Positions 52,436 through 59,335 of a DNA stretch of 64,000 nt are shown one piece after another. Where the stretch lies: positions 9,052,001 through 9,116,000 of the forward strand of contig OU015569.1 in assembly GCA_907165135.1 (NCBI GenBank), in the 5' to 3' direction. The position numbers and the translations under genes are program-made. Source of the DNA: Oikopleura dioica. Lineage: Eukaryota > Animalia > Chordata. Each line of letters begins with the position of its first letter. Within the stretch, counting starts at the first letter, position 1. Below the pieces are notes generated by a model. That model had not been told where the DNA came from. It did no database searches and saw only the letters and a program-made list of their open reading frames with translations.

Positions 52436-55400
52436 ATGTTTCGTCTGACATCTCGAGCGAGCAGCAGATCAGCTTGTAGTTCGGTCGAAGCGCGACTTGA
52501 AAAGCTCAAGGGAGGATCGGTCGACTTCCAAGTCAACAAGAACATCGGTTACATCAGGTTCTTAGACAACCCCTTTTTCAGTCTTTTCAATTGCTTTCGA
52601 TTCAGGATTAACAACCCGAAGAAATTCAACGCTCTCACTGGCAGGAATGGGTTCGAACGAAGAATTCTGCTCTGGAAGAAATTAAAAAATGGAACCCGAA
52701 AAGTATGATGCTCGATTTGGCGCGAGTACTCGACGAGGTGGACAAATTCGACGGAACTGGCATCGTCCTCACTGGAGAAGGAAAAGCATTTTGTGCTGGA
52801 TCCGACTTAAGAAACGGTTTCTAGGGCAGTCGAATCAGCCAACCCACCGGGCAGTTGATATTTTTTTTTTTTTTGCTTTATTGAAGATGAATTTCGCGGT
52901 AGAATTTTTTAATCCGATTTTATTCACAACGGTTTTTCCATTATTTTCAAATCGAGTAAATTTATTTATCCGTTTCTCAGTTTTTATTTAAAAAAATGGG
53001 ATTATCACAAAAAACACTCCCTTAAAATGAAACTACTCGGCACTAGTCTAGGCAGTCGATTTTCACGTGAGCTTGAATAATTACGTACTAGCCCTGATTT
53101 AGCACAGTTACTATTTTCAGAGTCAATTTTTGTAGAACTGATCTAGCAGCGCAAAAACGGCTAAAATGAAACCTTTTGTAAAGTTGCCTTTCGGAATTCG
53201 GGCAAGGCTTCGAAAGTTCATCCCTTGCGAATCTTTTTATTAAGTACCCCAGAAGATGGCGTTAAAATGGCTCAATTTATGCATGCGGCAACGAATCGGT
53301 TGTATTCGAATGACAATCAACTCACAGTTTCTTTTATTAATGGTCCAGCATTCGGGGGCGGCTCTGAGTTAGCGACAGGGAACGTTTGGATAGAGTCGAG
53401 TACCTCCCTGGAACTCGACCAGACATAAGACAAAAACATTAACGCGAAAATAGAGAAGGCAACTTTTCCGAAACGCCCCAACAGCCACCGATTTGAGAAT
53501 AGCCGCTCCAGAAGCAAAGGTTTCATTTAACGTTCGATTAAAACATCTTTGAAAACTGATGCTTTAGTTGGCCACTGTTCACAAGAACCTCGCCCTTCAG
53601 GAGCGAATCTCAATTTTCGAAATTTTCGTGTGTTTTTATATCCCTTTTTTCGTGGAATCAGTTAATAATTGTAGTTATCTTTGTTTACAATTAATGACGG
53701 CGCAAGAATAAGCTTAGACTGTCTTGTCTGCCCTCTTCTGAATTCATTTAGGCAAGAGTGAGACTATCAGCAGACACTCGGATATTAAACCGCGCCAGAC
53801 ATTTTTCTTTCTCCGGCGAATTAGAAATGTTGCATCGGAGTGTTCGGTAGAGATTCGTGTTCACAGCCAGGCTGGGCTGGTGCTACTCGTCTTGTTAGGT
53901 TCCGTGTTCAATCATTAATGATTCAGTCAGCCACTTAGAAACACTGACTTGGAGCTTGATGAATTATACATTTTCTAAATTGAATTTTTCTTTAGTTAAG
54001 AGTATTTCACCGATCAACAAGTCAGCCTGATCGACAGAAAGAGAGCTCAGCTATGAATCATGATTAACAGGCTGGTCGGCGCTCAGAACGCGCTATACAT
54101 GCTCAGCACCGCCAAAGTCTTCAACGCACAGGAATTAGTTGATATTGGCTTTTGTGTCCCAGAGATTATCGAAGATATTGAAGTCAAGGATTAAATTATG
54201 TTTTTCCAATGACCCGAAAGGCTTTCTAGAATCGATTTAGTTTTCTTGGAGGGCTACTCTGTTCGTTCTTTTTTTACTGTTCTCTCACGGGCTCTACTTG
54301 TCGCAAAGGTATTTAATTATAAATCAACTTTCGAGTTCATAGCCTAGCGCCGGGCTGGATCATATTTTAGTCACGGCCAATTTCAATAAGGAATCCAAAT
54401 TCCAAATCCTAACCCCCCATGTTTTTGTGCTCGTTGGAAAGAGCGTAAAAAGTTACGTCAGAAAAAAATAGTTTTAGAGGCTGAGTCATCATTGATGACG
54501 TCATGGCGGCTGGTTGAAGTTCCAAAAGTCCCAAAAGTTTGATACGCTCTCATTTTTTTTTCCACAAATGGAAAATTTGAGTTCAATACTGGAAAATGAT
54601 CGCCTTGACCTACTCTAGGTGAAGAGCTATATATGAAATATCCAACTCTAGAAAAAAAATTTTTTTTTTCGATTTTTTCAAAATTTCAACCTAAAAATGT
54701 TGAATTGCAATAGAATACTTCCAAATAATGAAATAAAGCATTTAAATTTGTTTCCTGGTCACAAAAATGATCATTCAAGGTCATCCGGGGTCATTTGAGG
54801 TCACAAATCAAAATAAAATTTTGCGCATTTTTGACTTTTTAACAAAAAATGCGCGCAAAAATCTAGGTAAGAGTATTTATTCAAGTGGGTGAAACTCGGC
54901 CTGATTGCCGGAGATTTCGTAGGAAACGCATTTTGAACAGAAGTCTGCAGCAGAGAAGAGACAAGAATCGCATAAATCTGGACAGACAGTATTGCTTATA
55001 TTATACAAGTAGTAGCTGCCGGATCGCTTTTCTTCGACCTTTGCCTTGATCATACGGATACTTCTTTGTCCAGTAATTATTTTCGATCCGTCGCTGCCCT
55101 TTTTCGAAAGCTTTCCCATATTCATAAAGAGATTGTCATGTACCATCATAATGCGCAAGTCTGTTGGAAGCGGGATATGAGCAAAGCAATGAAAGATGCC
55201 ATTCGGATCGACCATGTTAGCAGTCAGTCGTTCACCGAGAGAAGGAAGATAATCGCCGAGGCCAATAGCAGGAATACATTTCCCATTGAGCTCGTCGCGC
55301 TTCATCATTGTTTTCGCATGCCCTCCAACACCATCGATCTTCGATCAAGTTCAATAAATAGAGGAATGTGTTGATCCCTTACCGTGCTTTTCCCGTGGCG

Positions 55401-58400
55401 ACTTTGTTTGAAAACTTTGCATACGGGAAGGCCCCATCCATCCTCGTCAGACACATCAGAAAGTACTTTCCACGATCGATAATCCTACATATGATGTAAA
55501 CAAACTGCGCCGAATTCTTCATTACGCGCAAAATTATAATTTTGCGCAGATTTTTATTCTGCGCAAATTTTTGAATAACAAAACTTACGACAGCCTGGTC
55601 GCTCATGAGAATCGCACGTTCGTAGCCCTCGAAAACTTCATTGTCCTCGATGTATTTTAAGCATTTCTGGAAGTGAAGCTTTACAATATGTCCGCCCTTT
55701 TTCGAATAAGCATTGCTGTCGTCTTTCCAATACATCAAGCAGGAATTGAATCTTCTTCTCGTTAGTTTACCATCGAGCATAAAATATCCCCAAATGGTGA
55801 AACAATGGATGACAAGCTCGTCGTTGTTACCGCGAAGCGCGTTCTAAAAAATCATAATTTTGCGCAAAGATGGAGGGCGAATTCACATTTTGGGTGACCG
55901 TTCCACCAGTTTTCCCGGCACTGTATTCTCCACTGAAATCGCATTCACAGATCAAAGCGGTTGGAGGATGGATTATTCCGCGTCTCAATTTTGTGCAAAG
56001 ATGGCCTGTATGTCGCGTCTCATTATGATGAAAAAGATCGTTCTTGCAACGTTGCGCAGCCTCAATCAGTAGTTCCTGAAATCGAATAAAATTTTGCGCA
56101 TTTTTTCATTACAAACTTTTGCGGAAAGTGTTTTGGTTTGCGCAATGTTTTTGAGAATTCTCCTCTCATTGTCTCTTTTCCTTGCAAGATCAGCCATCAC
56201 TTTGACATAAAACTTCGGCAAGACATCGGTTGACGTGTCTTCCATGATGTCTTTGATCTTCTTATATTTTTCTGAAAGCGCAACGTTGATTTCGGCTTTT
56301 GAGTTGGGACCATGAGAGCAGCTAAATTTTGCGCAAGCATCATCGAACACTCCTAATGAAGGATACAGCGGATCGTCACAGCCTTTAACCTCCATGAGGA
56401 ATACGATGACTTCCTCAATTGAAAGATTGCGTTCCGTGATCTTCAGAAGGAATAAGAGATCGGCAACTTAAAATCAATTATGGAAATTTTGCTTAAAAAT
56501 TCAATATCTTTACCTCTAGACAATGTGTTTCGCAAAGAAAAACAGGGTGCGCATAAGCACGAATATTCATCTTTGACTTTTGGTTCAACAAAAAGAGGCG
56601 GAATGAGCTGTTTGAACTGAAATGCAGAGATTTGAGGCTTTCCGTCTCTGCATCTCTCCTTGTTGAATTCTTCGCAAAGCAAAGAGAATTTGTTGTGCGC
56701 TAACCTCCGATCGCAGCGAAATTTCTTTTTGACAGGCTTTGAATAATTTTGCGCATTTCCTGGCTCTTCCGCTTCTGCTCCCGGCTCGTCTTCCGCAAGG
56801 TTTTGCCGCTCATCTTCTGGCTCTTCATGCGCAAAATTTTGCGCGTCTTCATCCAACGCCTCATCCTCTGGCTCTCTTTGCGCAAAATTTTGCGCGTAAT
56901 CATCGATCGGCTCATCTTCTGGCTCTCTTTGAGCAAAATTTTGCGCGTCTTCATCGAGCGGCGGTTGATTGTTCTCGTCGTTGTTGTCATCGGCTTCTTC
57001 TGGACTTGCAACTTCAAACTGTACTACTGAGTAAAGCTTGTGGTTTTCTTCTGACATGAAGACGCGAAAGAAGTTTTCCGATGTTTTCTTCCGGAGACGC
57101 TGCTCATAGAACTCAAATATATCCGTCTCCGGCGCTTCATCGGAGTGGAAATATAAGTACTGAAGGACAGAAGAGATATCTTCATCGGTGACTCCGCGCA
57201 TTATTTTTCCGTGTTGGTCTGCTTCTTCATCGGCAATTTCATATATCTGTTTTTCTTTCAGAAGAAGCGCCTCTTCGATGTGATGAACTGTCATGGTCTG
57301 AGGATGTTTTGGCTCTTTAAAAGGCTCTGATAGATTATTGAAGAATTTAACGAATCGGTTTTGAGTTTTTCGATCAACGCCAAACATGAATGACTCGGGA
57401 AGCACGCACGCTAAAGCTTGAATTTTCATCTTGTGGGGGATGTGGAACCAATGTTGCGCAAAATTTGAGTTGAAGCTGTTCTCCGGGACTTCACTTTTTC
57501 GTTCGTTGTAAATAGCTAACATTGCTTTGCTCAGTTCTGCTGAAGCTTCGCCGAATTCCTTGTCCTTAATTTTGCGCATTCGTTTCACCATGTTCTCAAT
57601 CGACTCCCGAGTTTCATTTAAGCTTTCTTCGCGAGCATATTCGTCATCAGAAGGATCACTCGGCTTAGAGACACTCGACCCATCTGTTGATTGTGAGCTG
57701 TTTGTTGAGGAACTCTGATGACCAGCGTCATGATCAATTTCGACTCCTAAGTTAATTTTGAATTTCTGAGACTCCGAAAAATCGCTGTAACAAAAATTTT
57801 GCGCGTTTTAAAAAAATGCGCAAAGTTTTCAGTTTACCTTCCAGTCCGTCGCGAAGGCTCTGTTGGGACTCAGCTTGCTCTTGCGAATTTCTTTTGCTTT
57901 CTTCTATAATTTCTGTTGCCGGATCACAGAAAAGATAGTGAAGAAGAAGCTCATCGGAATCCTTGAAATTCTTTTCAGCGCAAAACGAGCAGTCAGGACC
58001 AAGTTGAAACGACGCGTGATTCTCTAACACTTGCTTCTTCGAATGGACTTCCTCCAATCTGCCGAAGATATCAGCAACTGCGATGCATTGATTGTAGTGT
58101 GTTCTGACTCTTAATTTTCGCGCACGAGTGACTTTCTCTTTAGAACTTCCTATGTTATCGTTGCATAAAAAGCATTTATGATAGAGCCTTGTGGATTTGT
58201 TTATGTCCCGATGAAGAGTAAATTTTCTCAGCGACTCATCATTTTCAAAAGGGTATTCAAGCATTCTATAACATTTTAATAACTATCTCTGATAATTAAA
58301 TAACAGAATAAAAATATAAAAAGGAAAAATAAATTTGCGCAAAATTTTCTCTGTCGAATTGTCCTCAATAGTGATCTGACTCTTCGAAATGCGAGCAATG

Positions 58401-59335
58401 TCCGCTCTTATCAGCGCGCATTATTGGTCGGCGGCTTGCGCAAAATGAATCATCAGGTTTCGCCTGGAGCAAAGCATAAATCTACCCCGAGAAATGCGCA
58501 GAATTTCTCAAAAATAGAAAAATGCGCAAAATTTTATTTTGATTTGTGACCTCAAATGACCCCGGATGACCTTAAATGATCTAGAGTTTGATCTTTCATA
58601 TATAGCTCTTCACCTAGAGTAGGTCAAGGCGATCATTTTCCAGTATTGAACTCAAATTTTCCATTTGTGGAAAAAAAATGAGAGCGTATCAAACTTTTGG
58701 GACTTTTGGAACTTCAACCAGCCGCCATGACGTCATCAATGATGACTCAGCCTCTAAAACTATTTTTTTCTGACGTAACTTTTTCCGCTCTTTCCAACGA
58801 GCACAAAAACATGGGGGGTTAGGATTTGGAATTTGGATTCCTTATTGAAATTGGCCCACAGAATCGAAATAAAGTACATCACGTGATAGACAGTATTGAC
58901 GTAACATCTATCTAGAGAAGCAACACTTTTAATCCTAAAATCCAGAATGGTCAGAAAGACACTTGTCTTCAGTGGATAGGGAAGGGGTCTCCGAGTCTGA
59001 TACTTTTATTTTGACTTTAGCTGGATAATTAATGAAGCCGTTAGTTATTGCAGACTCTCATTAGAAATGTTATTCGTGTGATGAAGTCTAATGCCAGAAA
59101 TGCTGTTACGGTGGGCTGGCTACTCACTGATGAAATAATAATTTATTTAGCTTTCCCTTGATGATGCATTTGGCGAAGAAAAGGGAAAGGGGAGTGAATT
59201 TTATTGCATTTTGCATTTGCGCTAGACGAGAAAATTTCACGACCACGATTCAAGAGAAACTTTGGCAGACTTATTGGACAGCCAGCAAACGTAGAAGCGA
59301 TCGCTGCCTTGAAAAGAAAACTCGAGAGGGATTGA
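52436..59335 (+). CDS. ECHDC1: Ethylmalonyl-CoA decarboxylase / enoyl-CoA hydratase domain protein 1
   Basis: NNPKKFNALTGSMMLDL, FCAGSDL, GPAFGGGSELATATDLRIA and VHKNLALQPGWAGATRLV. After the transposon the gene continues CLQWIGK / NVIRVMKS / LSLDDAFGEEK / RNFGRLIGQPANVEAIA, matching the ECHDC1 end GGPANLEAIA. Confidence 0.8.
54375..54652 (+). repeat. Left terminal inverted repeat
   Basis: Reverse complement of 58580-58856. A further segment at about 54768-54830 pairs with about 58518-58581. Confidence 0.95.
54877..58264 (-). CDS. 1005-aa DDD transposase (Sola-like) with two N-terminal C2HC zinc fingers
   Basis: Exons 57838-58264, 56514-57746, 56117-56466, 55887-56075, 55589-55843, 55383-55484 and 54877-55338 (3018 nt); six GT-AG introns, all phases compatible, no internal stop. 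Motifs: FKQLIPP...SCLCAPC, ECDFSGEY, ILMSDQAVDYRS and SRHGKSTIDGVGGHAK. Confidence 0.85.
56790..56965 (-). repeat. Coding tandem repeat (~51 nt unit, about 3.5 copies) in the transposase
   Basis: Encodes (P/A)LDEDAQNFAQREPEDE-like units; each unit contains GCGCAAAATTTTGCGC or a close variant. Confidence 0.85.
58580..58856 (-). repeat. Right terminal inverted repeat
   Basis: Reverse complement of 54375-54652. Confidence 0.95.

Follow-up and report, generated by a model that had tools for sequence, protein, structure and literature searches.

Why would a DNA transposon carry one short palindromic word along the whole of its transposase gene, in introns, flanks and exons? The question is raised by a 64,000-nucleotide stretch of the Oikopleura dioica genome (contig OU015569.1, forward-strand positions 9,052,001 to 9,116,000; hereafter the window, whose numbering is used throughout unless a locus is named), which contains a 4482-bp DNA transposon at 54375..58856 on the minus strand and, within it, a predicted transposase gene at 54877..58264 on the same strand. 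The word is TGCGCA, usually extended on both sides by T and A, and it is concentrated in the inner part of the transposon, between 54769 and 58581. The evidence presented below has led us to propose that these copies may have been selected as binding sites on DNA for a dimeric factor that acts on the transposase gene.

A palindrome concentrated in the transposase gene

Counted on both strands, the exact 8-mers TTTTGCGC and GCGCAAAA occur 20 times within 54769-58581 as against 6 times in the other 59.5 kb (26 window-wide), with starts at 54819, 54853, 55526, 55540, 55858, 56092, 56327, 56747, 56829, 56837, 56880, 56888, 56939, 57456, 57570, 57797, 57978, 58337, 58438 and 58524. The 10-mer AATTTTGCGC is present 17 times in this interval and 0 times in the rest of the window, and the 11-mer AATTTTGCGCA, with up to one mismatch allowed, 25 times and once, respectively. 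The common core of these words is the palindromic hexamer TGCGCA (20 copies inside, 12 in the other 59.5 kb). The TGCGCA word ranked first at k = 6, 7 and 8 in the comparison of the inner element with the rest of the window; the symmetrised consensus around it is AATTTTGCGCAAAATT, the usual form is TTGCGCA(A), and the enrichment of the motif words in the element ranges from 25-fold to over 500-fold. An initial annotation of this stretch had put the number of copies at roughly 20 and described the motif as sparse elsewhere. Both statements proved correct, the excess being larger than had been said, and three of the sites that it listed (55560, 57817 and 58495) are one-mismatch variants of the 8-mer in which the TGCGCA core is still present.

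Dinucleotide-preserving shuffles of the inner element alone gave a mean of 1.56 TGCGCA (maximum 7) against the 20 observed, a mean of 0.59 for the 8-mer against 20 observed, and a mean of 0.07 for the 10-mer against 17 observed. The initial annotation had also proposed a comparison with a codon-preserving null, and here too the excess holds: 2000 synonymous shuffles of the coding sequence gave a mean of 2.0 8-mers (maximum 7 of 2000) against 10 observed, and after removal of a 51-bp repeat block (see below) TGCGCA stood at 8 against 1.84 and the 8-mer at 5 against 1.0 (P<=0.0002). These comparisons support the view that the motif is non-random and under selection. Since the coding copies occur in all three reading frames (as AQN, MRKI and CAKF) and exceed synonymous shuffles, the exons appear to carry the motif as a second layer over the protein code, in agreement with the dual code that had been suggested. 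Per kb, the introns have ~15 motif copies, the flanks 12, the exons 3.3 and the rest of the window 0.2; the tetramer GCGC, taken by itself, shows a 4-fold enrichment in the element.

The transposase gene, searched exon by exon and predicted from open frames and GT-AG borders, has seven exons on the minus strand (58264-57838, 57784-56514, 56466-56117, 56075-55887, 55843-55589, 55484-55383 and 55338-54877), and 15 of the 20 TGCGCA cores lie between its start and stop codons. The exons align to two paralogues, L042 and L043, and to contigs from other samples, L052 and L053. The junction of exons 1 and 2 (57784-57838) is 1 nt out of frame, as exon 1 ends in phase 1 and exon 2 needs two bases; this discrepancy, which is absent from L042, is either a real defect of the single copy or a long-read homopolymer error.

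Intact cores are found in four of the six introns and a degenerate copy in a fifth, as had been noted at the outset. Intron 1 (57785..57837, 53 nt; all introns are given for the minus strand) has a core at 57817 together with the near-core TTTTGCGCG at 57797 in inverted orientation, and is predicted to form a hairpin (RNA fold z = -2.7). Intron 2 (56467..56513, 47 nt) has the degenerate copy only, and intact copies are present in this intron of L042, L043 and L052. The core of intron 3 (56076..56116, 41 nt), at 56095, sits in a 26-nt segment with 92% complementarity to the right-end sequence 58513-58538, and intron 4 (55844..55886, 43 nt) contains one full TTTGCGCAAAA site at 55861. Intron 5 (55485..55588, 104 nt) is the richest in variants, with cores at 55543 and 55560, a near-core at 55526, GGCGCA at 55506-55516, a tandem period of 17 and an RNA fold z of -2.8. 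Intron 6 (55339..55382, 44 nt) is without the motif and is missing in L042 and L043. RNA folding of introns 2, 3, 4 and 6 gave z values between +0.1 and +1.4 (intron 3, +1.4; intron 4, +1.3).

Within exon 2, a repeat encoding the acidic AQNFA sequence (56808..56962, minus strand) consists of 3.0 tandem copies of a 51-bp unit, each unit carrying GCGCAAAATTTTGCGC with the third degenerate, so that the 16-bp palindrome recognized at the core of this repeat by the initial annotation is present twice plus one degenerate copy. The repeat is absent from all relatives, where the alignment has a gap at exon 2 residues ~257-306/353; it is a lineage-specific tandem triplication. Upstream of the gene, the 5' flank (58265..58581, minus strand; promoter and/or 5' untranslated region) contains four cores, at 58336, 58437, 58495 and 58523. 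The 3' flank (54769..54876, minus strand) contains a core at 54822 and a near-core at 54853, and an AATAAA there overlaps the stop codon.

The mobile ends of the element do not share in this array. The outer terminal inverted repeats, 278 bp on the left (54375..54652) and their counterpart on the right (58580..58856), contain no TGCGCA in the outer 278 bp at either end; the left repeat, which also has no GCGC, is 70-78% identical to the repeats of L042 and L043. MITEs (miniature inverted-repeat transposable elements) of ~576 bp, which are the outer repeats alone, are dispersed in the genome, and the coding interior is single copy. TGCGCA was found 0 times in the seven MITE copies examined (4031 bp), which have the same termini; a perfect 3-bp duplication flanks six of the seven, that of L012 being imperfect (CCT/CCA). 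The motif reaches as far as an inner inverted repeat, in which three GGTCA half-sites at a 10-bp period are followed by a motif pair: on the left (54769..54854) the core at 54822 and the near-core at 54853, and on the right (58496..58581), as a mirror of the left, the cores at 58495 and 58523. A 116-bp insert of the transposon is present on the left side only. The span of 54800-58530 first assigned to the element therefore corresponds to its inner part; the complete transposon, with termini GGCC...GGCC and a 3-bp target duplication CAC, was delimited from its inverted repeats, the ends being read directly.

Site turnover in relatives and the same word in an unrelated family

Two paralogues were found in the genome assembly searched (64.28 Mb, 19 contigs), L042 on C5 and L043 on C3, at ~45% amino-acid identity and with outer inverted repeats homologous to those of this element. 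They carry 17 and 22 motif sites, respectively (<=1 mismatch), in introns 1, 2, 4 and 5 and both flanks, and TGCGCAA is the top 7-mer in both; which introns bear the motif differs between paralogues. The relatives from other samples, at 62-75% protein identity, have the motif in intron 2 (L052) and in intron 5 and the 3' flank (L053). Across six genes, ~20 of 26 introns hold a core where ~0.3 would be expected.

Comparison of the exonic sites shows how the array changes. Between this gene and the ~45% paralogues 0-1 sites are shared and 7-9 are private, with each gene keeping 7-10, and 4 of 5 are shared with the closer relatives L052 and L053. Private sites differ by substitution in aligned, ungapped codons, not by insertion. 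The codon-preserving null is exceeded for exonic TGCGCA in each paralogue (7 vs 2.1 in L042, 10 vs 2.2 in L043). Because only 0-1 sites are shared and yet each gene stands above its own codon null, the pattern suggests selection on site number, with positions turning over. Of the conservation in related copies that the initial annotation had named as a check, the high number of sites was thus borne out and the positions, at ~45% identity, were not. A site count far above expectation, a symmetric site and turnover of position are features that the array shares with homotypic clusters of transcription-factor sites, of which it may be one.

A full HMMER search returned 9 relatives only, and word searches with exon 2 and with the protein sequence P0004 returned one match each; one relative of this gene bears the NCBI name Oidioi.mRNA.OKI2018_I69.chr2.g6907. 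Family C, a group of the same superfamily at 27% identity, consists of three ~97% identical copies (L044, L045 and L046) with repeated motifs in their terminal repeats and, by reading of P0004, an N-terminal finger region similar to that of this transposase. No TGCGCA motif was found in the family C gene or its introns. Intron 2 matches family C in codon and phase, and family C also has short introns near the positions of introns 3 and 4. Since intron 2 occupies the same codon and phase in a motif-free family, this intron at least would not be tied to the motif. The suggestion that the motif had seeded the introns is not supported, as these are ordinary GT-AG introns with the motif in their middle, the motif-bearing introns differ between paralogues and the AQNFA repeat is absent from all relatives. 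Motif-free family C has three copies and each motif-laden transposase gene examined is single copy, a sample too small for correlation.

More distant relatives from other samples have a different word (GTCTGATT...AATCAGAC) in the same places. L049 and L050, which are closest to family C (38%), carry the palindrome GTCTGATTCAAATCAGAC and variants of it (L049:520-800 and 1740-1840; also L050); two introns and the 3' flank contain these, whereas the exons do not. The TARA relative L054 (29-157, 1550-1690) has an intron of ~230 nt with a ~25-bp inverted repeat, which shares the 9-mer TGCAAGCTA with an inverted repeat in the 5' region, and three direct CCATACGATTCGCCCATAG repeats in its 3' flank. 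The long inverted repeats of L042 (5411-5600 and 9206-9393) contain direct repeats of TTCAACCC(T)n, which differ from TGCGCA and are candidates for sites of end binding.

The same word saturates a second, unrelated transposase gene family. A hAT-like gene on C4 (L058/L066), so labelled solely from a reading of its C-terminal SAEIERNFS-type signature and with no usable Pfam match, contains 26 TGCGCA, with a core in 6 of 7 introns and an exonic excess over the codon null (5 vs 0.6); L067, its paralogue at 37% identity, contains 16. Between 0.2 and 1.2 kb upstream of the hAT-like ATG lies a tandem array of 9.4 units of 108 bp (L058:1846-2857; G000:C4:1313345-1314356), each with a TTTTTGCGCAAAATTTT palindrome. 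No DNA or protein similarity was detected between this family and the transposon described here, N-terminal regions included, and the hAT-like family has its own subterminal TTCGC-type repeats.

Of the 22 paired sites in the genome, 11 fall in these few loci, as do 10 of the 22 triple clusters, and most of the others lie in small repeat families. One such family has three TGCGCA in 67 bp (G000:C1:976695/979217, C5:9717429/9719963, C3:247243/254328 and others); in at least two places two of its copies stand ~2.5 kb apart, resembling terminal repeats, and it may be a third transposon type using the word. An intergenic region upstream of a small, apparently host gene (L060:1200-2000; G000:C1:480700-481500) is dense in CGCAAAA, CCGCAAAA and TGCGCAAAA variants. 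The k-mers enriched in L068 were considered as a motif and proved to be a (GACTC)n microsatellite; L068 is without a gene-body motif. When metagenomes were scanned for the 16-bp palindrome, 120 contigs came up; they are apparently unrelated and match by chance, the densest being high in GC and none being saturated. No relevant paper combining Oikopleura with TGCGCA was found in the searchable literature. A study of O. dioica by cap analysis of gene expression describes TCTAGA, a TFAP4-like motif, ACCATAA and E2F1 binding, and the TGCGCA word is not reported there.

What may read the array

We would give an even chance to the proposal that the TGCGCA array is a selected set of sites where a dimeric protein binds DNA and acts on the transposase gene. 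The motif is palindromic and often paired in the element, as would fit the sites of a dimeric binding protein, and the T and A runs that flank its sites show no strand asymmetry with respect to transcription (14 vs 12, p = 0.85; 19 vs 25), so that symmetric recognition of duplex DNA would fit. Since transposase genes of an unrelated family in this genome use the same word, the putative binding protein is more likely to come from the host than to be the transposase of the element itself. We envisage that the inner 3.8 kb, comprising the transposase transcription unit and its immediate flanks, would serve as a dense docking array on double-stranded DNA, and that the dimeric factor would act on expression of the transposase gene or on its chromatin state, not on recognition of the transposon ends. 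What selection appears to maintain is a high site count and not particular positions. Such free space as there is, in the middles of the ~45-nt introns and in the flanks, is taken up by sites, and exonic sites are written via synonymous or tolerated codons and, once, via tandem triplication in an acidic linker.

As leads to the factor, a C/EBP-type bZIP dimer or an E2F-like factor may be considered. The octamer TTGCGCAA is the canonical site of C/EBP bZIP proteins (PMC9630826, PMC6144830). It is present in full in 53 of 114 sites across the saturated genes, and most of the other sites keep one half-site. The motif word is also one base from the E2F consensus (TTTSGCGC). Canonical E2F sites were rejected as the basis of the array: in the inner element TTTCGCGC occurs once and TTTGGCGC 0 times, compared with 20 TTTTGCGC, and E2F words show no enrichment. 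Also kept alive as a candidate is a factor that varies with lineage or host, because L049 and L050 carry GTCTGATTCAAATCAGAC and the intron repeat of L054 shares a 9-mer with its 5' region.

Several observations weigh against a dimeric factor as the reader of the array. Both superfamilies have lineages in this genome that are free of the motif, from which it would follow that the array is not required for the survival of such elements. The proposal is drawn from sequence, the bound factor being a candidate; the full TTGCGCAA is found in only 7 of the 20 cores of this element, and, with 29 matches to PF07716 (bZIP_2) in the genome (best, 65.8 bits), a C/EBP orthologue in the host is putative. 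The different palindrome of L049 and L050 would fit a factor coevolving with the element as well as a different host. Finally, all sites are in or near the transcribed region, which leaves room for a role at the level of RNA.

Such a role would have UGCGCA bound by an RNA-binding protein, or engaged in intron pairing, to control splicing, export or stability of the pre-mRNA. It would account for a density that is highest in the introns and flanks, for the location of nearly all sites between the inner repeats, and for the folding of introns with two or more copies, which is better than in shuffles (introns 1 and 5). The mixed orientation of the sites cannot on its own decide between DNA and RNA, because a palindrome gives UGCGCA in the transcript either way. 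Single-site introns, however, do not fold (introns 3 and 4), the distance from a site to either splice site is variable, the runs flanking the sites show no sense/antisense asymmetry, and a search of Rfam gave no family match. Moreover, transcription is unlikely to include either the hAT-like 108-bp array, which extends to 1.2 kb upstream of its ATG, or the site at 54822, which lies past the AATAAA. We regard an RNA-level element as unlikely. Quite unlikely, in our estimate, is that the transposase of the element itself binds the sites with the C2HC-type finger region at its N terminus, in transpososome assembly or autoregulation, as the initial annotation had envisaged. Exon 1 does encode two Cx2C...Hx3C motifs, and paralogue L042 gives a weak zf-C2HC5 match (E = 0.0055); the motif pairs are symmetric in the inner inverted repeat at both ends, intron 3 holds its 26-nt near-copy of end sequence, and the different palindromes common to introns and flanks in distant relatives are as expected of a coevolving site. 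Nevertheless, the paralogue-conserved outer repeats and at least seven transposed MITEs with 3-bp duplications do without the site, the same word saturates the hAT-like family with its dissimilar N-terminal region, and family C, with a similar finger region (by reading of P0004) and three ~97% copies, is without the motif.

Very improbable, in turn, is an array of no function, generated by composition, tandem duplication, gene conversion or insertion of palindromic fragments and carried by descent. The 51-bp triplication supplies 6 of the 20 exact 8-mers, intron 5 shows a 17-bp tandem pattern and GCGC by itself has its 4-fold enrichment, all in keeping with this explanation. Against it, the excess survives repeat removal, dinucleotide shuffles and codon-preserving shuffles; exonic sites lie in aligned, ungapped codons and differ from the paralogues by substitutions; site density persists at ~45% protein identity, a divergence at which neutral sites are saturated; and the motif has arisen independently in the unrelated hAT-like family.

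Extending the proposal of a dimeric factor to both families, we suggest tentatively, with somewhat less than even confidence, that unrelated Oikopleura DNA transposons have convergently furnished their transposase genes with the same palindrome, in introns and flanks and at synonymous sites, as a gene-body-wide word read by one dimeric factor that would license or restrain expression. If so, transposon and host would meet in a regulatory interface of a new kind, the selected trait being site density across an entire transcription unit. It would also be a clear example from nature of synonymous and intronic transposase positions under selection for a DNA-level signal, reached independently by two superfamilies. 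A single factor reading the array would offer a simple handle on the expression of DNA transposons, or on their restriction to one copy, in an animal genome that is among the most compact. Motif density also marks Oikopleura transposase genes that are missed by Pfam.

Classification of the element and comparison with known systems

Searches of Pfam with every exon and with the open frames of the paralogues gave no usable match at E up to 10, and none to DDE_Tnp_ISAZ013 (PF07592). Neighbours found with a protein language model lead to the DUF7869 and DDE_Tnp_ISAZ013 (PF07592) clusters. The AlphaFold model of P0004, made from a fragment alignment, is poor (mean predicted local distance difference test score 50.7); its sole confident part, residues 600-869, showed in Foldseek a weak likeness to an RNase H-like integrase core (E at best 2.7e-3). 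Members of the Zator / ISAzo13-like superfamily have a 3-bp target-site duplication, and those of the Sola superfamily reportedly, from Bao et al. 2009, one of 4 bp. The 3-bp duplication at this copy and at six of the seven MITEs (the seventh imperfect), and TTT at L043, fit Zator rather than Sola.

Two further features of the ends were observed. The GGTCA half-sites of the inner repeat (AGGTCA/GGGTCA/AGGTCA, exact 10-bp period) lie at 54778-54805 and 58545-58572, and the MITEs have none of them; a direct repeat of nuclear-receptor type or the true inner sites of the transposase are possible readings. The hexamer TCTAGA, which in O. dioica is a male-specific core promoter element (PMC6389100), is found at 58580-58585 (mirrored at 54647-54652), ~317 nt upstream of the transposase ATG. 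With 18 copies in the 64-kb window, its presence there is not significant alone.

Introns derived from transposons are known in a related host: Fritillaria borealis has non-canonical introns from MITEs, that is, transposon-derived hairpin introns or introners (PMC11282704). The introns described here resemble these in that the host is an appendicularian and in that they hold inverted-repeat sequence related to transposon ends. An origin from MITEs is nevertheless not supported, as the present introns are canonical GT-AG introns with a central rather than a terminal repeat and no border duplication, and intron 2 has the same codon and phase in motif-free family C. For hairpin stability in the intron RNA, only introns 1 and 5 lie below shuffles (z about -2.7).

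In C. elegans, the introns of germline genes contain periodic An/Tn clusters (PATCs), which protect against germline silencing. Like the TGCGCA array they are intronic non-coding sequence along the gene body, and they are selected for a DNA-level effect on germline expression, not for splicing; unlike PATCs, which are phased A/T tracts with no core word, the array consists of a defined CpG-containing palindrome that is also found in exons and flanks. The site itself resembles that of C/EBP, being a palindrome as for a homodimer with exact TTGCGCAA in 53 of the 114 sites of the saturated genes, and differs from it in an extended consensus with longer T and A runs (AATTTTGCGCAAAATT); we know of no C/EBP role in transposon control.

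Arrays of short sites are familiar from transposon ends. Subterminal transposase-binding repeats, such as the AAACGG hexamers of Ac/Ds, the 12-bp TnpA motifs of En/Spm and the IR/DR (inverted repeat/direct repeat) structure of Sleeping Beauty, are confined to the terminal few hundred bp, are retained by non-autonomous derivatives and are family-specific. The present element has in common with them a short motif repeated many times in either orientation, with copies also within the inverted repeats at its two ends. It differs in that its outermost 278 bp and its MITEs are without the motif, most copies are in the gene body, and an unrelated family shares the word.

The Drosophila gypsy element carries ~12 copies of the site of the host zinc-finger protein Su(Hw) in ~350 bp of its 5' untranslated region. 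The likeness is that of a transposable element with a dense array of one short site, and in gypsy the array is bound by a host protein and acts on expression and chromatin rather than on integration chemistry. The array described here, whose binding protein is putative, is unlike that of gypsy in that it is no compact block and runs the length of the transposase gene, through almost all introns and through synonymous positions of the exons, in being made of a 6-16-bp palindrome, and in that its site is common to two unrelated families of DNA transposons.

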